A stretch of 63,717 nucleotides of DNA, the filler included, from Trichosphaerium sp. ATCC 40318 (lineage: Eukaryota > Protista > Tubulinea), in assembly GCA_038496445.1 (NCBI GenBank). It is 4 parts of 4 records of this genome, joined end to end, with 100 filler letters (N's around TTAATTAATTAA, not from the genome) between each part and the next. Parts side by side here need not be neighbours in the genome. Positions count along the whole stretch, not along the records: positions 1 to 21,533 come from JALMLS010000372.1; 3 more parts are not named here. One strand, given 5' to 3'. Below are positions 701 to 20,869 of the stretch, piece by piece (the first letter of the stretch is position 1; each line of letters begins with the position of its first letter). Position numbers and translations under genes: made by a program. The notes under the pieces are model-generated. The model made no database searches. It saw only the letters and a program-made list of their open reading frames with translations, and was not told the origin of the DNA.

Positions 701-2229
701 TGATGTCATTCAACGCACAAAACTCAGAATAGGTTTTCAGCCCAGGCTATGTAAAATTGAACAAGAAACAGCAAGCCATAAAGGAAAAGAAAGGCGCCTG
801 TGAGGATTAAAAGAAAAGAAAAGGAAGAAAAATCTACACAACCCAGAGAAAGGCCTAAAAGCAAGCTGGCGGTACCAACGCGCCAACGCAGCTCAATCAG
901 CAAAAAAGGGAAAAGGAGCTAAACAACCAAAACCAGAAAAAAGAAGCCAAGAGGAACCAGAAGATGAAATATTCAAGGAGATATCTCTAAGCGAGGATGA
1001 ATCAGCAAGTGCAGGTCAGTCACGTGCTGTCGCTGCAGCACGTGACAAGGATGAAAAGAAGACTCATCATGATGATGACGATGCCAGCGCTGCATCAGAC
1101 GAAGATGAAAGTGACAGCGGTGAGGATGATGATGGGTCGAGTGACAGTGGTGATTCTGTGGTTTTGGCGGAATCATTACCAGCCATGGATGACGGCGAGG
1201 AAGACGCTATACGTTCAGATATCTTGCGGCTGATGCGCGGTGAGAACATCGATACTGCTGATAAGGCTAGAGCACCTGATAAACTATATCTTGAGCCATA
1301 CACAGGTATGTCTGTCTCCAACCTCAGTGCGCATTGAAAATAGTATTGTTACTAACTGTTTTTGCCAACAGAGAGCCATCCTGCCTGGATCAGACAAATA
1401 AGAGACTTTGTTATAACTGGTATCCCTCCTGAGGAGAGCGTTGCCAATGTCCGTAAGTTTATAGAGGAGCACTGTGGTGAAAAACTAAAGTATGTCCTGT
1501 GATTGTAAAAAAACCAATCATTTGATTGTTATTCCAACTCATTCATTTCTAGGAAAGCCAAGAGGCATGAAGATTGGCCTCCTACTACTGTCATGTTCTC
1601 CGTTATGACTGAAAAATCTCACAAACAGGTACGGTTGTTAGGACGTTCTTAGTAGTTATTGTAGTAACCATCCCACTGTCGTAGATTCCTATATTGAACA
1701 AGCGCAAATTTAAAGGCAACGTTATCAATGTGCGTTGAATCGGTTATGTCGTACATTGTGCTCACTTGCGAAACAATCTAGGTGTATCCTGCACTCAAGG
1801 CTGTAGATAAAAAGGTAAGTAGTAATCCTCCACTCTTGATTTATAGTTGACGTATATGGTTAGCGTACGATTGTGGCGTATACCTGCCCAAAGAAAGAAG
1901 TTAGCTTAATCGATGAACGTAAGTTATTGAACGAATCAACTAGAAACTTGGATTGTATTTTGACACAACCCTCTCTTTTAGGACTGGACAAATATGGAAC
2001 TGTAGTGTACAGCACAGTTATTCAGTATGAACAAAAGTCAATCCTTGTAGCAGAGTACAGCAGTCGTGAGGTTAGTCAAACTTAATTTAAATATTGTTGC
2101 ATTGTGGTGGTTGGCTCATTGTTTACTTAGGAAGCAGTTCTTGCGTCAAAAACCAAATACTTTCAAATAACAACGAGAAAGGGACGTGATCTCAAGATAC
2201 GTATACTACCATTCATCAAATTTAAATGA
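688..2229 (+). CDS. Nucleolar-type RNA-binding protein: Lys-rich and acidic N-terminus plus RRM-like domains
   Basis: K/E-rich then D/E/S-rich tract (DDDASAASDEDESDSGEDDDG), followed by RRM-like exons (FVITGIPPEESVANVRKFIEEHCG; LDKYGTVVYSTVIQ). Stop TGA at 2227-2229. Start uncertain. Confidence 0.55.
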
Positions 2230-2365: not shown

Positions 2366-3541
2366 CTAAACTGCCAAACCCAAACCACGGACATATTTGA
2401 GTCCCTTTAGACAATTAGTGTTCGTGATAGCTGACTAGTAAGAGGTACCTCATCAATCTTGGTCCATAGGGTGTCTGTGCTCTTGACTTCAAACAGGATA
2501 GGTCCTTTGTACTTTAAGTCGTTAACACGTTTTACCTGTGCTGTCCAGTCTACATCTCCCTACAGATCACGTGAGCATTCTCTCCCTCAATAGTTTTTCG
2601 CACATCTGCTATCGTATCGATGGTGTCACCATTGACTGATTGCTTCAAGTGCATCATGCCAATCTAACAAGAGTAATCAACATGCCTGTTTTTGGTAAAT
2701 ACTATCTGGCCGTGTGTACCGTGTTTGCGTCTTGAATCTGTGCAGCGCGTGCCTCAGAGTCCTCTGCTTTGAATTGTGTTTTCAAGTTACATGGATCCCA
2801 ACACAGCTTGATATCTTCACAGCTGGCAGATGCAGCATTCTAAAGAGACCATTAATCTTGACGTCTTTTTTTTTTCTTTGTTTTCTGCGTACCGCTACAC
2901 GCATGTGTTTGGCAAAGTCTTGCTTGCAGTTTTCGATGACGAGGGTGGCGTCCTTGCCAGCTACTTTCCTGAGCTCTGCCAATAAAGTTTTAAGAGAAGC
3001 AGTTACACGTGCTTCATCCACCTTTTCAAAGGCAGTAGCGACGGTGTAGGTGTCGACTGAACCGGTTTATTAGCTTCGAACGTCCTTTTACTCAATGCAC
3101 TTGCCTACACGGAGGAATGGCTGCTTAAAAGCGCCTTTTGCGAGTGCTGCAGCTGTTTTACAGCCTTGTTGGAATATTTCATCGTCCGTTGACAGCCTTC
3201 AGCTTTGTAAGATGGTTGTTTTAAAGGTAAACGTACTCTCCGCTGAGAATTGGTAACGCCACAGCCAAATTGAACCCAACGTCTGGGAATTGAGTAGCAA
3301 GCTAGTGTATGACGTTAATACGCGTATGGGTTTATTGTAAAGCGGTTACTTTGCCAATTTGCTCTGGATTTGGCACGCATTTCGGGCCAGTCTCGTATGG
3401 TTCCCCAATATGCGTTTGTCTGAGTTCTATGTAATTAAAGCCTTTGCTTTGGGCTTGTTTTATTAATTCTGGAAGTGGCGTTCCTTGTTTTCTTTGAGCA
3501 GCGAAGCAGTTGCTCACTAATCCTAAAAACTGTGTTGCCAT
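2366..3541 (-). CDS. Xylose isomerase-like TIM-barrel protein (sugar phosphate isomerase/epimerase, AP endonuclease family 2 fold)
   Basis: Motifs GFNYIELRQ, LVIEN, LCWDPCN, IGMMHLKQ, GDVDW and YKGPILFE across about 6 exons. Confidence 0.75.
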
Positions 3542-3671: not shown

Positions 3672-4961
3672 TTACAAGTTTTGGTTATTATGTCTTTCCT
3701 TGACTTCATCCCATGTCACATCAAACCGCTCTCGAAGCAACCATGGATATTGTGGTTTACCTGTAGTTGGCGATATACCTACGTTGATTATTAGTGTTTA
3801 AATTGTAAAGAACTTGAGATCTCGTTGAGCAGCAGTTGTACCCTGGTAGTGGATTGTCAAAATCGCGCCAACTTCAGGAGGGAATTTATAGTCACTTGTC
3901 TGACACCTTATGCTTATTTCACCTCCACCAGGCCTATCGGAAGTTAGCTAAACCCACGTGTATATTCTGCTATACGTACAACTCTACGAGCAAATAATTG
4001 TTTGATGTGGATGGACGAACAAGCTTCACTTCCATCTCCACTGATTTCTACAAACGTTTGTGAGCAATACAACACAAAAAACGAAAAGCAGTTTACCTTG
4101 ACTTTGAGTACTTGGGATGTCCGTCCTGGTAGGTAATACGCATACTTGTTGCGTATAACTAAGCCCTCTCCTTTTAGATAATGGTTAGCGTTGTGAGGTA
4201 CAAAAAAAGTCAAAAAGGTATTCCATACCTTTAATGGCCTCTACTTTATCGAGGTCTTTCAGTAAGTGCTCTTTGCTTTTACACTCATACTGTTCAATCA
4301 CGATTGCGTGTTTATGCTCCTTAGGGATAAGTTTCTCTCTTAACAGTTCGTAGCGTTGTGCAAAAGGTAGATGTATAGACGGCGAATCGAAAATGTGATA
4401 CACCAATTCTAGCACAAGTCAGCATGTTGCAAAAAAGTCGTGGTGCGTACGATCCCACTTCTTTTTAGCCTCTGAGCGCTGTCTAGTTATACTTGTCAAC
4501 ACCTTTTGTAGTTCTCCATAACCAGACCTGCGTATTTCAATTTAGGGGCTGTGTAAGGGTGGGATAGACGGACCATAGTTCGCCATCTAATGTCATATTT
4601 TTTGGGAAGCCTTCTATGAATTCTGGAGGCGGTATACCAAGCACTTTTCCGTTTCTAGAGATGAACTTTTCGTCCCAGTACGCTCTTATACCATCATACT
4701 TTTCAGAGATGAGCCTAACACAGAAATAGTTAGGTAACGACAACATTGTGTAAGCTCATAAGCTGAAACCGTGTACCATCCTGTTGGATCCTGTTCTTGG
4801 TCCCAATCGCAAGGTTGTTGTATAGTTTTACCTAGTAGAGTACATGTTAATGTGTTGCCTCGCTGTTGTACATCTTAGATGATTGTACCTCTTTGAAACT
4901 GATTTTCAGGAGTGAACATGACTGGCCGTGCTTTGTCTTTGTCTCCACCAAAGGCTTTTGG
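3672..4961 (-). other. Minimal ATP-dependent DNA ligase domain (adenylation + OB fold, Chlorella-virus/LigE-like)
   Basis: DPTGWLISEKYDGIRAYWD (motif I, adenylated Lys). Motifs III, IIIa, IV and V are all present in spliced exons. Confidence 0.9.
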
Positions 4962-7900
4962 TTAATTGATGGCAGCCATAAGAGTATCAGCATCATATCG
5001 CCACCATCCAGGGACAGGTATCAGTGTTATACCTATATTCGATATGATTAATCTATTGCCCTCTATGGCTGTTTGTTTTGTATTACCTTCTTTGGCACAA
5101 GCTTCTGTCTTTTGTGCATAGAATGCGTGGAAATCATATGCTGGTCTCATTTGACGCTCAGATGCAGGTAAATTAAACTCATCCTCTGTAAAACGATATC
5201 GTCAGTTGAGTTTGCTATGATACCAATGTTTTGCTTGCCTTGAAAGTCAAAGGCAATTTTTTTAGTAGGTACATAAAAGTCCAGCTTGTCGTTAAAAACA
5301 AGCGCCTTGATATCATCTGCCAGCTTCAAACATGGATGTGCGAAATCTCTTACAACCTCATCATCTGGAACAAGCGAGGAATAAGCGTTTGAAGGATTCT
5401 AGGACGAAGTACAAGTCAGTTGGGGAACGCTGTTGAACATTGAGGACGCACGTTTTGGTAAGACCAGGGTTGCTATCGAATAACAGCTCGCCTCTGACCT
5501 CCCCTTGTGGGTATACTATACTCATTGCTTGATTAAAATTATCGCGATACCGTGCAACAAGAGAATTTCCTTGATTGGCTGTAACTTGGGATTTTGTGAC
5601 ACGATACCAATCCGAAGGTCTCTCAATGCGAAACATTTTTTCCGAATCTCTTAAATAGAAAATAAATCATTCAACAACAAACATGGAATATGGTGTTTCA
5701 TACCGTATCCACTGCACTACTGTATCGATGTCATACCAAATATCAGATCGCAACGGTTTAAACATCCAGTCTTTCCAGTTGTGGTGCTCGTAAACTTGAT
5801 GTAGGACGTCAATCAAATCGCCGCCACATTGAGTAATTACAGGATCCGCTGTTGAACAATCTCGTAAGTCTTCATAGGATGAATTTCAATACGCGTACCA
5901 TAGGCCATAACATCTTTTTTCTTTACAGTATACCAATCGTCAAGTTGCTCTACACCAACTCTATCACCCACCCAATCAAAGAACTTTTTCAGTTTGGTGA
6001 GATCGCTTGGAATAGATTCATTCCTAAAGCAATCTTTTAGCTAACCCGTAACTACGAAAGCAATGGTGATTGGTCTACCTTGCTTTGAAGTAATCCCATT
6101 GTTGCTCAGGGTAGAATGCCACTAGCAAATCTAACAAATCATTGTACTCGCTAACCAAGGTATTAGTTTGATTACATGTATACAGCCTTAAGTACCTCGC
6201 AAATTTGCCACCCTTCCTGACTATACTCGCTATTGTTACATTGTACCAATCTCCTGGTATATTCTTAACACCCAGATCTTCCAATCTAATTTGCAATTGA
6301 GTAAGTTAACCAGTATTTAAACCGAAATCACCTTTGTTAACTGTTTCTTTTGTGCTCTGAATTCTTCGTCCTTTCGAGATATCTGCGCAAGTTCCTCGTC
6401 TGTAGGACCTGGGACTGATGTCAGCACAAACCCCTCAGCCTGTATACAATGAATGACATACCGAATTTTTTCAAGTCCCATTCGTAGCCATCATACACAT
6501 TCATTAACACTTCACGCAATGAGTTATTGTATAACCTATCGTATAGTAAGCAACGGGATACAATTTTTAAAACCCATACGTTAACAGCTCTCCGCCACCG
6601 TAGTTGGTTAGTGCTGCTGGAAATACGCTGTACCACTCAGACATGCCGCTGAAATTGAGGATCTTGCCTAGCTGATTGGGAGTTAGCTGCAGACTGTTTG
6701 CATAGTGTAGACCTCGTCTAGGAATATTTTCCTATTCGCCTCAATTGCAAAGTAATCCTTCTCACTCAATTTACTTGTGAGACGACGTATATTCCACTTT
6801 GTGCCAGGAAGCAACGCTGAGAACATCTTGGGAATGGAGTTATCGTACTCCCTAACAAACAATACGTAGTCAGCTTAGATGTATGTCACGTGGCTGGAAA
6901 GGGTAGTCCAATTATTCTACGCACTTGAGAAGGCCAATGGCACCCATGTTCTTAATCCTATTTGCATTGAGCCCAGCGTTGTACCAGTCTTCTGGTTCTT
7001 GTTTTATTTCAAGGTCTTCTTTCAGCTAAAAGATGACAAGGTCAAAAAAACTGATCGTGTGTGTGCATAGATCGTACACAAGCAATAAAGTTGTCTTGAT
7101 TGGCTTGAATAGTCCAAAAACCCTTCTGCCGTCTTGCTTCTATACACAAAATGTGAGTATTAAAAACACGTGATAGGTTTCGTAGTATCGTACTAATTTG
7201 CCATAGCCGCCAATTTTTATCTGGATACATTGTCTGTAATAGCTGTGGTACTCCCATTTTAAAACGTCTTGTGGACAATACATCAATAAATAGGTTTTTT
7301 TCAAAATAGTGTCTGGTGTGGTGTACTTTAAGAGATTAGAACCTCCTGCTTTCTTGAGTTGTATTCTCGAAACGTTGTACCAATCATTCAAGTCCTTCAT
7401 CTCAAGGTGCTCGCAAATCTAAGTTTCAGTTAGAACATTAAAACTACCACAAAGATATGTCCATACTCTCTCCAAGAAGGCTTCTTGGTGATCTGTCTTG
7501 TACCAGGACAACCCATCAACTCTACTCTCTAAGACACAAAAAATAAGATTTATCATGGTGAAGAAGGAAGGAACTTGCCTATGAGTTGCATGTCCCATGA
7601 GTGTTCAGGAAATGTGGCTTTGAGGGAATTCAAGAAATTGCCATCATACTTTCTACAAAAACAGACGTGACATGTCAGTAAGGAACAAAGCCTTGTGGTT
7701 ATGAGACGTGCTCAAGTAGTGGCCTGCCACCAAGTTCAACAATCTCGTCTTTTTTGACAGTAAACCATTGTTGCGGTAATTCGTCCAGACTCAATTTTTT
7801 AGCGCACTACAGCGTTTTGTCAGGCGTGTACACGCTATTAATCATGGCGCTACAAAATAATGTCAAACCTCATCTAGAAACACTCTATGATTTGTTTTAT

Positions 7901-8106
7901 CCCAAAAGCTCTTTGGGCGTTCTTTGATAACTACTGAGTTTAATATGACGTAACAAGTCCAAAAGACGTTTTTTTGGCGTTGTACCTTCGTCGTCATCGC
8001 AATAATGGCGGTTTTGACGCTTAGCTGTAATCGCTCGTTTATTTATCCCAACGATTAGTGTTTTACACGCCCTCGATGTAAACGCAGTGCGTAGCCCTTG
8101 CAGCAT
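3672..8106 (-). CDS. Putatively mitochondrion-targeted Trp-rich repeat protein (7 repeats) + PD-(D/E)XK-like nuclease + ATP-dependent DNA ligase, with an in-frame TAA at 4962-4964
   Basis: N-terminus MLQGLRTAFTSRACKTLIVGINKRAITAKRQNRHY|C. Repeats such as LEMKDLNDWYNVSRIQLKKAGGSNLLK...LQTMYPDKNWRLWQI. Nuclease LDFYVPTKKIAFDFQGKQ...GITLIPVPGWW. Ligase motifs EKYDGIR, LDGELW, YHIFDSP, EGLVIR, VLKVK and OB-fold end GKPQYPWLLRER. Confidence 0.8.
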
Positions 8107-8333: not shown

Positions 8334-10589
8334 ATGTTAGAGTCTACTACTGTACAGCGCGTGGTTATGTTGTGTATAATAGTATGCTCGTTTGGTTTTG
8401 GCGAGGCTTGCAGAGAAGTTGATAATTTAGAGGATGTTACTACAGTACGTTTACATAATATGGTTCAGGCCAACATGTCATTTGTAGAGTGACGACTGCG
8501 TGCAAATAAGCGGCGATGAGCTTCATAATATGACTTGGGAAGGGTATAACAACATTAGGGTCGTTTGGGATGGTAACACCAGGGCACGTGATACATAAAA
8601 ACAAATGTGTTCTAATTGTTAAAATTTACAACTTGCCAGATAAATTTCGAGTCTATCACACTAACAAACTGCACAAACATTAGCATTGAAGGCTTTACAT
8701 TCAACAAACAGGCAGCACCCATAATAACCGTCAGCACTGTATGTTTCCATGGTCCCGCTGTAACATAACTTTGACGTAGACTCACACGACATCACTTTTC
8801 AAAATGGAGAAATTACTTTTAGTGAAGAAGACAACCAAATTATCATAAATACAGCCTGCACCCAAAATAATAAGGTGGACTTTCGAGAAATGAGTTTTAC
8901 AGCCGATTACTTTGACAAGATCAAAGAAGTTATTGATGTAAAAAGTGGGCGACTAATACTTGTTGATAGTACTGCCACTGGGTGCACTGACAGTATGCCG
9001 CGTAATACCTTCATGTAACCCCTTTAGAGTTTATAAGGTCAGACAAAGTGTGTGGATACGGTAACAGTTGGTACTACTCCTAAATTACATGACGCTCATT
9101 GAATCTTGTAGATAAATTTTCGTACAACTCCAACACGTGTGAATCAACCAAGATTTTTGAGTACGAGTTTTATATAGTCTAAAACAAACTTTGACGTTTT
9201 CCCTAACAGCTGTCACGATTCTGCACATTTTGTTGTGTCAAATGTTTTGATCCATGGTGACATAAAGCGGGTACCAGTTGTATTTTTGGTAACATCTAAC
9301 ATACCCAAGCGCTACACGCTGAGTGCGATACTAAAAAGATGGGAAGTTTACTCTTGAGTATGGAACATTCGGCAAAGGCACACAAGCGCTATTACTTCAA
9401 CACTAATGCACACAGATATCACCAGGATTGAGGAAGATGAAGACAAAAACGACATTGATGAGTGGACTTTCATCAACTCTTTGGTGATGACAAGCAAACA
9501 ATATGGGCCAACTGTGCTCAACGTAGAGGCTTGTTTTTTTTCAGATATTGACAATGGAGACTACCGTTTAAATGCAAAACAATCCTCAAGTATATTTGAT
9601 GGTACGTTCCTTTAAAGTACTGAGTTCCAAGACTTAAATCGCAACAGTACCAATATCGAGTCAGAGCGCCATAAACTACGACATTGGTACGCTCAATACA
9701 AATTGTAGTTTAGTAACAGTCATCGACAATAGATGGTGTCATTCGATTACCGGGTTTGGAAGATATTGGCGCATACCAGTCGGTACAAAAACAACGCTTT
9801 ATAGTCCCATTAACGTCAATTACGATAGAGACAATGCAGTCTAGATACACGACCTTCAAATGAATACTTTTGTGCTGGGGGTACGATAGAGAAACAAACG
9901 AATGCCGTTGAACCTTTTTGTTAGATGAATGGATCAAAGAAACATCTTGTGGAGGCACCCAACTCCCAGATTTTAATTGTATATGCGGTAATGCAACTTG
10001 GTCATGTGCTGGAAGTTCCTTACTTTATTTAAAAATCAGATAATTGGATTGCAGATGATCCTGTCACCATCTTAGTACCTACACTGTGGAATGGGACCTA
10101 TGTATTCAATGCCAATGTAACAATCAATGCAACTCAGACTTTTGCAGATGCCTCTGTACTCACATTTACCGGTACGTCCTATATGAAACCAATTGAGTAT
10201 TTAATTACTACACAGCATGTGCAAGTGTAACAGGCGATATCAAATTTACTGCGGATAATATAATAGATGGCGAAGCACGTGATCAAGTGAAACGTCACAC
10301 ATTGTAACTTTGATTTAGATACGGGACATATTTCTTTATAGTCAAAACTGTGTTGAAGTGACATTAACATAAAAGAAATTAACAGGGGTTGTACGACAAC
10401 AACCGGTACACCAATTGACGATAAACAAGGTACATCCTAAAATAGGATCATGTCAGTCTAAGCACTGACGTTTTAGGTCACTTTTCTGTACTGTTCTCCC
10501 TACAAGATAAATGCAACCAAGGCTCTAACAGCGGTCTATCGCCAGCTATAATAGCTCTCATTATGATCGCCATTGTGGTTCTCATCTAG
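8334..10589 (+). CDS. Secreted/membrane-anchored surface protein with possible beta-helix-like ectodomain
   Basis: Signal-like VVMLCIIVCSFGFGEA, many short exons, Cys-containing stalk and C-terminal hydrophobic SGLSPAIIALIMIAIVVLI*. Confidence 0.55.
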
Positions 10590-17107: not shown

Positions 17108-19362
17108 ATGATTATTCGTTCAAAGAGAAAACCAAAACCAAAGCCAGTTTCATCACCTCTTGTAGATGCAGCAGACGCTGGGGATTTAGCAAAGGTTAAA
17201 CAGCTTCTAGAGGGTGGCGAGGCGATTGAACAAGCTGATGTTGAAGTGCGGGAACAAAAAAAAAATTAAAAAAGGGGCTAAGTGTATAAAAAGGGATACA
17301 CGGCGTTAATATCAGCTGCGATAGCACCTCATAACGAAATAGTCAGTCTTTTAATTGAAAAGGGAGCAAATTGCAATGCAAGCGCAAAAGACGTACGCCT
17401 ACGTTTCTCTATTAAAAAAACCAGCCAAACAGAGCGTTTATGTGAACCATCAAACAAAGACCTTCAAAAATCCGCTTACAATCCGTTAGGGGGTTACTCC
17501 ACTCATTGCTACCGCCATGGAGGGACATATTTCAACAGCAGAACTACTCATTAAAGCAGGTGCCGAACTAGACGCCAAAAACAGCGAGGTTCGTACTCAC
17601 ACTACCCGTTTGACCCGTTTACGCCTCTCTAAATTAGGGTTACACTGCGTTGACAGCTGCGGCAGTTCAAGGTCATTTAGAATACATAAAAGCTCTTGAA
17701 AAGGCAGGCGCAGATCCTTCTGCTGTAAACAACCAGGTGAGAAATCGATTTGATAAAGTGTAGTCTTTTTTGTTGAAATTATTTTTCCGTTACGCGCGTA
17801 GTGGTCACGTATATTTACTTGTTTTTGTCGTTAGGGTAATGGTATGCTTCTTTGGGCTTGTAGGGCAAAGCATGTACCTATAATCAACTGGGCGCTATCT
17901 CTAGAGAATATTGATACCAACAAGGCGAATAGTTTTGTGAGTCTTCAAACCAAAAAAACTTTTGAAAACTCCTCTTTTTTGGTCGCCTGTCGTCCTCTTT
18001 TTTAGACTTTTTCACGTGTTATTATTTTATACGTGTTTATTGTTGTTTTTTTAAAGGAGAGACACCTCTATTATGGGCTGCATTGACAGGACTTGATGAT
18101 GTTGTCAAAAAGTTGTTGGAAAGAAAAGCTGATCCAAATGCTTGTTCGAAGAAGGTTTTTTTTTCAAATTTTTGTTCGTTTTCAAGTCACTTAGTTTCGA
18201 TAACAATATCTTAGGGCGATACACCGTTATTATGGGCTTGTCAACAAGGATCTTTGAATATTATAAAGATGCTACTAGAGCACAAAGCCAACACTGAATT
18301 GAAATCACAAAAGGTGAAAAAAACACTTTGTTTTTGTTTTTTAGTCTCTTCACGCGAGTGTTGATATTAATATATATATTAGGGTGATACAGCATTAATG
18401 CGTGCTTCTTTACATGGACAATTGGATGTTGTAAAATTATTGTTAGAGTACAAGGCTGATGTCAATACAACAAACAAACACGTATGCAAAAAAAAAACAC
18501 ACGATTATCTATTTTTTTTTTCTAAATAGTGTTACTCTTTAGGGTAATACTCCATTGATTGCTGCTGCTTTCTATGAGAGAAAAGGAGTTCTTGAGTATC
18601 TTTTACCATTATCGAATGTTAATCACGTGAGCAACCAGGTACGCACTCGATTGTTTTTTTTTTTTTTTCTGTAAGATACTCAAAAGGGACATTAAATTAA
18701 ACGTGTATTGATCTCATTTTAGGGTTACACAGCTTTAATGGCTGCTTCAACCAAGGGTTTTGCAGACATGGTACTTATCCTCCTGAAGGCTGGTGCCACT
18801 GTAGAGGACGCAGATCCAATTTACGTACGTACAAAAGGAAAAAAAAAACCAAGCAAATCAAAAAAAAAAACTTTCAAAAAATATAATCATAAATGTCACC
18901 AAAATTGTTTGATTTTTCTGCATCAATTGTCATTGCATGATTTAATTTGAATGATACACAGACAATACTTCAATTTTTTTGTGTATGTTGGTTGTAGTCT
19001 AATATTTGTTGGTTTTTGTTTAGGGTGCTACTGCTTTAATGTTGGCGTGCTTTAAAGGTCTTAAAGAATGTGTTGTTGCTATACTTGCTGCTGGAGCATC
19101 TATTGATACAAAGAATAAGTCTGGTAATACTGCTTTAATGGTAGCAACAAGCAAAGGACATTTGGAGATTATGAAGCTTCTTTTGGAGGCTGGCGCTGAT
19201 GCCGATATTGAGAATGACAAGGTACTGATAGCTCCTTCTTTTTTGGAGGGAAAAAAACCCACGTGTTTGCTTTGTGTACTCATGGTTAATGTTTAGGAAC
19301 AAACAGCTATTCAAATGACTGATAAACCAGAACTAAAGGCATTATTACATCAATGGGGTTAA
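17108..19362 (+). CDS. Ankyrin repeat protein (~12 repeats)
   Basis: Successive exons begin GYTALISAA, GVTPLIATA, GYTALTAAA, GETPLLWAA, GDTPLLWAC, GDTALMRAS, GNTPLIAAA, GYTALMAAS, GATALMLAC. Start uncertain. Confidence 0.9.
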
Positions 19363-19555: not shown

Positions 19556-20869
19556 TTAGTAACACAAATATGGCAATAGCTGCACAACCATACCAGTGTT
19601 GTACACGTTAACACTAAACTTATATGAATCACCAGCAAGATTTATTGATTGAGAAGTTTTTTCATTCACATGAAATGCTACACACTTTCTGTTCATATCA
19701 AGTGTAACACCAACAATATCACCTTTTACACAACACATAAATGATAAACAGATAAAACTTAGAGACATACCTGTTGTGAATACTGATCCTCCCTTGTTTT
19801 CACCCTTGTCTGAATAGTACACTTTACCATTAGCACCACAAATAGATGCACCACTAGCATTTTTCCCAGCGCCTGGATAGTTTTTAAGTGAAAACCCTTT
19901 GGATGGCACTACACCAATCATAATATCATTGTTGCCTCCTTTGATAATCCTTGATAGTGTTATTGTTAATAACAACTGGGTACAACTATGATCGTACTTG
20001 TAGGCAGTGTAGTGAACACCACAACAAAATTCTCCTTCAACAAGACAACTGGTATTTCCATTGGCAGTGTACTTTACAAAAGTATTGCCACCATAAACTG
20101 ACAAATTAGGGTGTTTATCCTTATCCGAAAACCGAAATGGTTGCGACTCATGCAATTCTAGCTTTTTGACACGTGATATCAATTTGCTGACCTATTCAAT
20201 TGTACTGTATCAGTGGAGAATAACAGGCAAATAGTATAGAGACTAACTGTAGTTTCAATAATCTTTTCCTTGTCTCCACTTTTAGTTAGTTTAAATGTGT
20301 ACTTTCTTGTAACATCCAACACATCAACTTCATCAACGACAATCAATAACTCGCTTCCTTCAACTTGAACTGACAACTTGAGTCCTCCCAACTAAAAGCA
20401 AACAAGTAAAACTAACAACTAAAAATCAACCATGACCCCTTTTGTACAGCAGGTATGGTTCAACCACAAATACTATTGTTTAACTGTGAACAATTGTAGC
20501 TCTTAGTGTTTGTTGTGCTTCATGCCTGAGTGAAGGCATGTGGAATGTACCGTTGGTCAATAAATTGGCTTAATAAAAACAAGGAAAGACAAATTTTTGG
20601 TAGTGGGGCTTTGAATTAAAGTCGCATTGAATGTGTAATGAGTCGATAAAAAACGTACATTTGAGGCTGCAGCTTCAAATAATTTAACAACATGAGCTAA
20701 TGTTGGGCATTTGTATTTTAAATCACCTTTTAATGCCTTGTTGCCTTGTAGAACACTCAAAGTGATTGAAATCGGATAAAGCTTGAATCTTCAGTACATC
20801 ATCTCTTATAATCTGTAATGTAATCTCAAAGCCACTTCGCTCAAATGAGAAGCTTGGGTTTTCTGCCAT
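19556..20869 (-). CDS. SPRY/B30.2 domain protein; apparent frameshift near 20750
   Basis: DIMIGVV, GDIVGVTLDMNRKCVAFHVN and YKFSVNVY are typical SPRY strands. Confidence 0.7.

Follow-up and report, generated by a model that had tools for sequence, protein, structure and literature searches.

The question raised by the minus strand of positions 8106 to 3672, in a stretch of DNA from Trichosphaerium sp. ATCC 40318 (Tubulinea; assembly GCA_038496445.1), is whether one gene encodes there a single enzyme able to bind, cut and ligate nucleic acids. The whole stretch analysed, called the window hereafter, is 63,717 nucleotides (nt) long, filler included, and joins four parts of four records end to end; the locus lies in the first part (positions 1 to 21,533, JALMLS010000372.1). 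An initial annotation, made by a model from the sequence alone, had read it as one mitochondrion-type gene in which a repeat array, a PD-(D/E)XK-like nuclease and a DNA ligase of the ATP-dependent kind follow each other in the same frame. The answer has two parts: (i) as assembled, the locus is made of two open reading frames (ORFs) and does not encode one polypeptide; (ii) judged from homologous sequences, the architecture repeat + nuclease + Lig E is that of a conserved, undescribed eukaryotic family, named R(n)-N-L here, of which the locus is an interrupted member.

The gene model was built from 29 short coding anchors and from the enumeration of every GT-AG join linking adjacent anchors. 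It runs from the ATG at 8106 to the TAA at 3672 (8106..3672, minus strand) and comprises 29 exons separated by 28 GT-AG introns, each 38-73 nt long. One of the 28 introns (5033..5086, minus strand; 54 nt, in frame, GTAATA..ATATAG) was added from homology and not from anchor joins: the conserved end of the nuclease-like domain, ...KEGITLIPVPGWW, is recovered in the window only after removal of 5086..5033, and the window then reads ...TEACAKEGITLIPVPGWW, matching the ...C...GItLv.vPYWW of homologues. A longest-ORF dynamic-programming splice model was rejected, as it tracked non-coding frames. ORF1 (4962..8106, minus strand; 21 exons, 699 codons + TAA) holds a presequence candidate, seven repeats and the nuclease-like domain. 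ORF2 (3672..4919, minus strand; 9 exons, 274 codons + TAA) holds a complete Lig E-type ATP-dependent DNA ligase, i.e., a nucleotidyltransferase domain and a probable oligonucleotide-binding (OB) domain. The view of one gene in one frame is therefore right for the frame, which the ligase shares with the repeat + nuclease part, and wrong for the continuity: a TAA (4964-4962), between nuclease and ligase, and a 1-nt deletion break the ORF.

The repeat-core profile obtained from seven exons of the window was searched against 1.84 billion representatives. At E<=1e-3 it retrieved 2486 proteins (representatives at 50% identity), 920 of which reach E<=1e-10. The top 150 proteins contain 1012 repeat units (median 6 per protein, up to 25), and 85 of these 150 proteins have a nuclease-like domain of the kind seen in the window, almost always at the extreme C-terminus. 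The organisms named as sources are the amoebozoans Cavostelium apophysatum and Nematostelium gracile, together with Heterolobosea sp. BB2, and many metagenome and Logan contigs come in addition; the family is rich in Amoebozoa and Heterolobosea. A ligase follows the nuclease in 2 of the top 150 proteins, and two follow-up searches raise the number of one-ORF R-N-L proteins to at least 32, found with complete ORFs in Arcella intermedia, several EukProt transcriptomes, an MMETSP transcript and JGI contigs, and also in C. apophysatum, Logan and metagenomes. One of them lies on a 10.6-kb genomic contig, as an ORF of 1055 aa between genes for a ROCO kinase and a RING-finger protein, which excludes transcript chimeras as a general explanation. 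These fusions contradict the idea of a ligase never fused in homologues. In module order and in the use of one frame for all modules, the window agrees with the R(n)-N-L proteins; the single ORF, continuous in 32 homologues, is interrupted by the TAA. In the literature searched, neither this repeat, nor its pairing with a Vsr/RAP-like domain, nor the ligase fusion was found described, in agreement with the earlier statement that no characterised protein is known to have this architecture.

ORF2 scores 211 bits, over its full length, on a profile of free-standing Lig E proteins bearing PF01068 and PF14743; the minimal ligase initially announced is recovered with its motifs and a probable OB region. 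Motif I, SEKYDGIRA, with the adenylated lysine (4681..4707, minus strand), is aligned to SEKlDGvRA of the profile; motifs III (DGELW), IIIa (HIFDSP), IV (EGLVIR) and V (VLKVK) are aligned as well (IV and V at 4097..4168, minus strand), and the alignment runs to a VI-like end, PQYPWLLRER. Exon 22 compared with solved structures gives Lig E (8u6x, E 1.9e-5; 4d05, 4.4e-5; 6gdr, 7.9e-3). The exon-level match of the window to PF01068 has E 0.073; for the closest homologue, P0183, the same model gives 41.2 bits (cut-off 26.2) and PF14743 gives 21.2 bits, under the cut-off of 28. The ligase had been called Chlorella-virus-type: it is instead of the Lig E type, a relative of that type and not a member. 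On the basis of these alignments, ORF2 is predicted to be a full and active Lig E-type ligase, with all catalytic motifs intact.

A tree of 47 ligase domains was calculated (quick search, midpoint root, supports from the Shimodaira-Hasegawa-like approximate likelihood-ratio test, SH-aLRT). One branch, with an SH-aLRT support of 100%, has on one side all 26 Lig E ligases that are free-standing and lie outside the fused proteins, and on the other every fused protein. The ligase of the window pairs with that of fused P0183 (support 87; 39% identity) inside a group of fused proteins supported at 94; its branch is long (1.46 vs. a median of 0.52). Since it nests among fused ligases, we infer from the homologues that the gene descends from a fused ancestor and that the stop is secondary.

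The array comprises seven repeats, R1-R7 (residues 42-568; 5499..7931, minus strand), delimited with a leave-one-out hidden Markov model (HMM) and with the family profile; R5 is without its N-terminal third. Each repeat scores 30-52 bits in the leave-one-out HMM, vs. at most 7 bits for shuffled sequences, and 29-67 bits on the family profile made from the 1012 units. The number of seven given at first is thus correct, while the period is ~77 aa and not 65-70 aa. The family consensus is W..fW...NqR.F.....L.i...eDWY.V....i...GG..LL..Y..S....L...YPe..W. In the model of three units (predicted local distance difference test, pLDDT, 96; predicted template modelling score, pTM, 0.82), every 77-aa unit is built of five helices and the array is fixed, a geometry different from the 35-40-aa helix-turn-helix repeats of the PPR, OPR and HPR alpha-solenoids. 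The PPR, TPR and FAST models of Pfam gave no matches among the family members scanned, and Foldseek gave no match between the repeat model and the PDB. Compared with the DUF4046 models of the ESM Atlas, the template modelling (TM) score is 0.63-0.66 over ~210 residues. One family member has a sub-threshold match to PF13255 (20.1 bits, cut-off 22.8); no significant DUF4046 sequence match was obtained for the window or for most family members, and DUF4046 is not mentioned in any paper found in the literature search. Between 5650 and 7868, introns recur at equivalent positions of successive repeats. They follow GGxxLL(x) in R1-R5, precede L.i...DWY in R1-R5 as well as in R7, and also lie at several boundaries of units, a recurrence which suggests that the array grew by duplication of sets of exons.

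The third module is a nuclease-like domain of Vsr/RAP/DUF2726 type (residues 597-696; 4974..5365, minus strand), which reads KLDFYVP...AFDFQGKQNI and ends with PVPGWW. It had been noted as nuclease-like, and its score of 45 bits on the family nuclease HMM confirms it, although the 85 members mostly lie at 72-125 bits. The family consensus is ELDxFIPxLxLAFEYQGEQHY...RDxxK...GIxLIxIPYWWD, with invariant Gly, His and Asp. EYQGExHY is kept by the 21 fused homologues with a readable motif (21/21); the window has DFQGKQNI, i.e., the invariant His is replaced by Asn and the core Glu by Asp, and thus departs from the conserved catalytic signature. These two changes make cutting doubtful for the copy of the window, whose nuclease domain is probably catalytically dead. 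Of the bind-cut-ligate enzyme initially proposed, the architecture is retained, being conserved in at least 32 proteins, and the cutting step is the doubtful part here.

The fold was approached with a homologue from Cavostelium, P0018 (residues 240-514, pLDDT 91). The model is close to Vsr (1cw0, Z 11.0), to the DUF559 protein NGO0050 (3hrl, Z 10.6) and to I-Bth0305I (3r3p, Z 10.2), then to a Toxoplasma gondii mitoribosomal RAP protein (Z 10.0) and to the RAP domain of human FASTKD4 (Z 9.1); the analogy with FASTK/RAP proteins drawn in the initial annotation was thus apt. Through its homology to the modelled P0018, the domain of the window would have a restriction-endonuclease-like core. DUF2726 (PF10881) matches 12 of 56 family members (P0054, 29.6 bits, cut-off 24.7), and RAP (PF08373) matches none of the 56. 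The nuclease exons of the window, taken singly, have no match in Pfam, single-exon queries being nearly blind. For the 73-aa nuclease exon, a homologue search and a metagenome scan found nothing, and PDB sequence searches brought no useful result for the nuclease exons, for exon 24 of the ligase or for the last exon. Some family members depart from the common layout: P0054 and P0086 have two nuclease domains each, and P0016, P0025, P0030 and P0112 have C-terminal extensions of 110-520 aa beyond the nuclease. In the genomic ORF of P0157 (L082, 4347-7514), ~50 low-complexity residues, rich in Pro, Ser and Leu, lie within the nuclease domain; this insert looks like an in-frame unspliced intron.

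The interruptions can now be considered. The in-frame TAA (4962..4964, minus strand) is located 12 codons past PVPGWW, ahead of a P(D/E)xF motif that fused homologues read through. Between it and the ATG at 4919 there are 14 stop-free codons, PKAFGGDKDKARPV (4920..4961, minus strand), which align, weakly (P..F only), with the nuclease-ligase linker of fused homologues. This linker is ...SL..TLh..rPDvF....IP...lmhG.eW...DPTGW.iSEKLDG, and the window tracks it across the stop as AAIN-stop-PKAF...QDPTGWLISEKYDG. The chance of a shared frame without any stop over the 14 linker codons is ~17%, which is not significant. A variant code with TAA as sense codon was rejected: TAA also closes the ligase ORF, at the place where homologues end, and the TAA at 4964-4962 is the sole other in-frame stop in the 29 exons. 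As the final TAA is homologous in position to the C-termini of the homologues, TAA is a genuine stop in this organism.

The second lesion is at the junction of exons 18 and 19 (5366..5452, minus strand). It is read by comparison with two small public runs of one sample, whose contigs are 95-99% identical to the window; being spliced, they are RNA-derived, from a sister strain or species. Eight introns are exact in these contigs (3779-3841, 3934-3979, 4048-4096, 4171-4228, 4715-4776, 4832-4888, 5650-5703 and 5849-5898), i.e., 6 of the 8 introns of ORF2, plus 5650-5703 and 5849-5898 within ORF1; the ligase is thus expressed and spliced in the sister strain. The contigs carry in-frame 3-nt insertions relative to the window, after 5298 and after 4670, and these two in-frame differences between strains point to coding constraint. 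A ninth intron is also seen, with a shifted donor, at the junction in question: the sister uses the donor 5451 (GTGCGT) with an intron of 53 nt and has one more base after 5366. With the donor 5451 the window frameshifts (...IPRLFQMMRL, then stop), and it keeps the frame only via a weaker donor, 5447 (GTCCTC). On the family profile the sister-type reading scores 95.4 bits overall, vs. 85.4 for that of the window (best domain 95.1 vs. 82.7). The extra base of the sister and the better fit to the profile indicate a 1-nt deletion in a CC run of the window, to be ascribed either to an error of long-read assembly or to a genuine frameshift.

Regarding the destination of the product, the N-terminus of ORF1 contains a candidate mitochondrial presequence of 36 residues (7999..8106, minus strand) with 8 K/R and no D/E, ending in RHY followed by C; the Arg-rich, acid-free N-terminus first noticed is thus well described. 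Basic, acid-poor leaders of 25-60 residues are found in 24 of 39 complete-looking family members with a charge and composition heuristic, and the same heuristic finds similar leaders on several to many fused homologues, so that, by this crude charge rule, N-termini across the family have a mitochondrial look. ORF2 starts with MFTPENQ and has 5 D/E in its first 30 residues, i.e., neither presequence nor signal peptide; in this it resembles other eukaryotic Lig E and not the periplasmic form, the canonical bacterial Lig E having a signal peptide. In P0180, a 294-aa ligase-only protein inside the clade of fused ligases, an Arg-rich leader of its own runs straight into the end of the linker; this protein could be the product of a natural fission, or else an isoform with an alternative first exon. 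The leaders of the family, that of P0180 and the proposal that the kinetoplastid mitochondrial ligase K is a relative of Lig E (PMC10665377) together suggest mitochondrial targeting.

The reading favoured here, held with as much doubt as confidence, is that the locus is a copy of the fused R(n)-N-L family whose ligase seals nicks in the organelle, tethered by the repeat module. The ligase would be the working enzyme and would seal nicks in the DNA of an organelle, probably the mitochondrion. The repeat array and the nuclease, or pseudo-nuclease, would form a nucleic-acid-binding and targeting module, comparable to the DNA-binding domain of larger ligases. Lig E-type minimal ligases have no DNA-binding domain, hence the repeat + nuclease module is read as a tether or targeting device. 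Relatives with intact EYQGExHY may couple incision to sealing, as a short-patch repair; for the copy of the window, cutting is unlikely. The bind-cut-ligate mechanism as such is hypothetical.

Several observations weigh against this reading. The proposed targeting is derived from a charge-count heuristic, and ORF2 translated alone would not, from its N-terminal composition, enter mitochondria. The exhaustive structural alignment of the repeats to the PDB has a best Z of 4.3, for single units vs. TetR-type helix-turn-helix proteins, which is not significant. The sister ligase contig ends at 4921, and 4922-5151, which includes the TAA, is not covered by contigs. Phage and giant-virus contigs often hold relatives of the nuclease domain alone, thus a mobile or defence ancestry fits as well as an organellar one. 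Lastly, in one fused subclade (P0096, P0156 and P0157; L001, L082) the lysine of motif I is replaced (RRYEG, SRHLAG, SESYNG) and the nuclease motif is intact; the ligase is then not a working enzyme there, and the notion of a ligase with an adaptor is weakened. These three proteins are the reverse of the window, which has an intact ligase and a degenerate nuclease. The loss of the lysine is, as far as sequences tell, evidence that the modules can each act non-catalytically.

The interruption itself leaves two outcomes of roughly even odds, i.e., one chain (the TAA being an assembly or allelic artefact) or two products (a real nonsense mutation or a gene fission). In the first rival explanation, a serious one to which we give somewhat less than an even chance, fission or decay is real: the repeat-nuclease part is dying or truncated, and the ligase is made from the ATG at 4919 as a cytosolic or nuclear repair enzyme, in the manner of other Lig E of eukaryotes. 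The R-N part has indeed three independent lesions (the TAA, the 1-nt deletion and the degenerate motif) next to an intact ligase; ORF2 holds the whole Lig E core; the ligase-only P0180 exists within the fused clade, and the branch of the window ligase is long. Moreover, the sister ligase contigs have a word depth of 14-19 vs. 2-9 for the upstream exons, and one of them has its end 2 nt upstream of this ATG; contigs break inside the ligase mRNA too, so this end is weak as a transcript start. A separate ligase gene is also difficult to accommodate in the 42 nt between stop and ATG, which leave no space for a promoter or a 5' untranslated region outside ORF1. As to the decay of the upstream part, its exons are expressed, spliced and differ by an in-frame 3-nt indel between strains, and the repeats of the window score like those of intact relatives.

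The second rival, possible and yet more doubtful than probable, places the lesions in the assembly or in one allele: the living organism would have an intact R-N-L gene and one protein of ~990 aa. The deletion in the CC run is a typical long-read error, and the sister has the base. The TAA is less typical in this respect, because it requires a substitution and not an indel. The frame is equal on either side of the stop, the linker has no further stops and fused homologues read through this position, although the shared frame and stop-free linker have the non-significant chance probability given above. The nesting of the window ligase among fused ligases is in favour of an intact gene, while the degenerate nuclease motif is not explicable by a single error.

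According to a third explanation, which we consider unlikely, the family is not organellar: its members would be selfish or defence sequence-specific endonucleases (homing-like, cf. I-Bth0305I), and the fused ligase would reseal or repair the host genome. The Z of 10.2 with I-Bth0305I, the abundance of nuclease relatives in phage and giant-virus contigs, the presence of Nucleocytoviricota among the look-alike clusters of the ESM Atlas, the members that are single ORFs on very long metagenome contigs and the many paralogues of Cavostelium are consistent with it. Against it, the repeats and the nuclease are found together in only 1 of 80 viral loci (L002; loci L002-L081), presequence-like leaders are present on many eukaryotic members, and the closest multi-domain structural analogues are RAP proteins, of mitoribosomes and of the FASTK kind. 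A search for AxEY[QH]Gx[QHY]H[YF] gave 259 viral stretches with the nuclease domain alone, on phage and giant-virus (GVMAG) contigs of IMG/VR.

A bypass of the stop by readthrough or alternative splicing is highly improbable: in-frame GT-AG paths over the TAA exist (e.g., from 5086 or 5032 as donor to 4955 as acceptor, or from 5015 to 4899), but their introns would be 78-132 nt long, i.e., longer than all 28 introns of the model (38-73 nt), and the splice enumeration found no GT-AG or GC-AG intron that excises 4964-4962 without deleting the nearly invariant PxWW strand, the last of the nuclease, so that splicing-out was rejected unless this conserved strand is lost too; UAA is the tightest stop, and UAA followed by C is not known to be a leaky context.

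A bolder and distinctly unlikely reading would make the ~77-aa repeats a new modular code for the recognition of nucleic acids, PPR/TALE-like, in which each unit reads one short element of sequence. In that case R(n)-N-L proteins would be natural, programmable enzymes of a find-nick-reseal kind, with the mitochondrial DNA or RNA of Amoebozoa and other protists as substrate, and the much larger R(n)-N family would be the functional counterpart, so far missing, of RAP/FASTK where RAP is reported absent.

The surroundings of the locus indicate that the genome is very compact. The next multi-exon minus-strand gene has its ATG at 3541, ~130 nt downstream of the ligase stop (window 3335-3541); its exon pieces at 3335-3541 and 2785-3066 have no match in Pfam. 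On the other side, at a distance of 228 nt from the ATG at 8106, position 8334 opens a plus-strand ORF whose start resembles a signal peptide. Elsewhere in the window are a 208-aa ORF with a sub-threshold SPRY match (19559-20182, minus strand; 23 bits, cut-off 26.3), an exon with an ankyrin repeat (17282-17551, plus strand; PF00023, 25.9 bits) and a 177-aa stop-free low-complexity stretch rich in Lys, Glu, Asp and Ser, without match in Pfam (804-1334, plus strand). Rfam and tRNA scans of the whole window gave no matches.

If confirmed, these results would describe a large unannotated eukaryotic family (2486 representatives) that combines a repeat fold without solved relative and a RAP/Vsr-like domain, i.e., candidates for a new class of factors that target nucleic acids, either organellar or mobile, in lineages surveyed as free of RAP. 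The module would be the first accessory module other than PBZ on a eukaryotic Lig E, and the fused subfamily a candidate mitochondrial DNA ligase of these protists and a natural example of a targeting domain built into a minimal ligase. The natural half-dead variants (ligase lysine lost in one clade, nuclease His lost in the window) are ready separation-of-function tests. As the gene is interrupted in the assembly, annotation pipelines will call two genes or a pseudogene.

The comparison with known systems can be made module by module. Vsr, DUF559 (NGO0050) and I-Bth0305I have the same fold as the domain of the homologues, and D...E.QG..H...D..K of the family parallels the Vsr-type active site, from which the window differs by His to Asn and Glu to Asp; in contrast with these proteins, the domain of R(n)-N proteins sits behind a long repeat array, in eukaryotes. 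The repeats of R(n)-N resemble DUF4046 (PF13255; Bacillota and some Amoebozoa) in predicted structure, with the TM scores given above; DUF4046 itself is, as far as we know, uncharacterised.

At the level of the whole layout, the FASTK/HPR-RAP and OPR-RAP proteins (FASTKD4, 9gek; T. gondii, 9g6k and 9i05) have the same succession of presequence, helical repeats and C-terminal Vsr-like PD-(D/E)XK domain. They differ by their helical hairpins of 35-40 aa, vs. units of 77 aa and five helices in R(n)-N-L, and the R(n)-N family is unmatched by the Pfam models of RAP, FAST, PPR and OPR, while DUF2726 is matched. We know of no FASTK or RAP protein with a ligase. A survey of RAP proteins found none in Amoebozoa or Excavata (PMC8190603), i.e., in groups that include sources of the present family.

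For the ligase, the closest system is Lig E (4d05, 6gdr, 8u6x; bdelloid rotifers and Mortierella, PMC10665377), with which the window shares the nucleotidyltransferase domain, the catalytic motifs and, probably, the PF14743-type OB domain. Bacterial Lig E has a signal peptide that ORF2 does not have. The eukaryotic enzymes act in DNA repair, and PBZ zinc fingers are the only accessory domains described for them (PMC10665377); in contrast, the ligase lineage of the window is outside the supported group of the free-standing Lig E and is fused behind repeats and nuclease. The kinetoplastid k-alpha and k-beta ligases (Lig K) belong to another lineage and have neither repeat array nor nuclease module, the likeness being drawn from their description in the literature. 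Small, related to Lig E and working on mitochondrial DNA, they set a precedent for an enzyme of the Lig E kind in mitochondria (PMC10665377).

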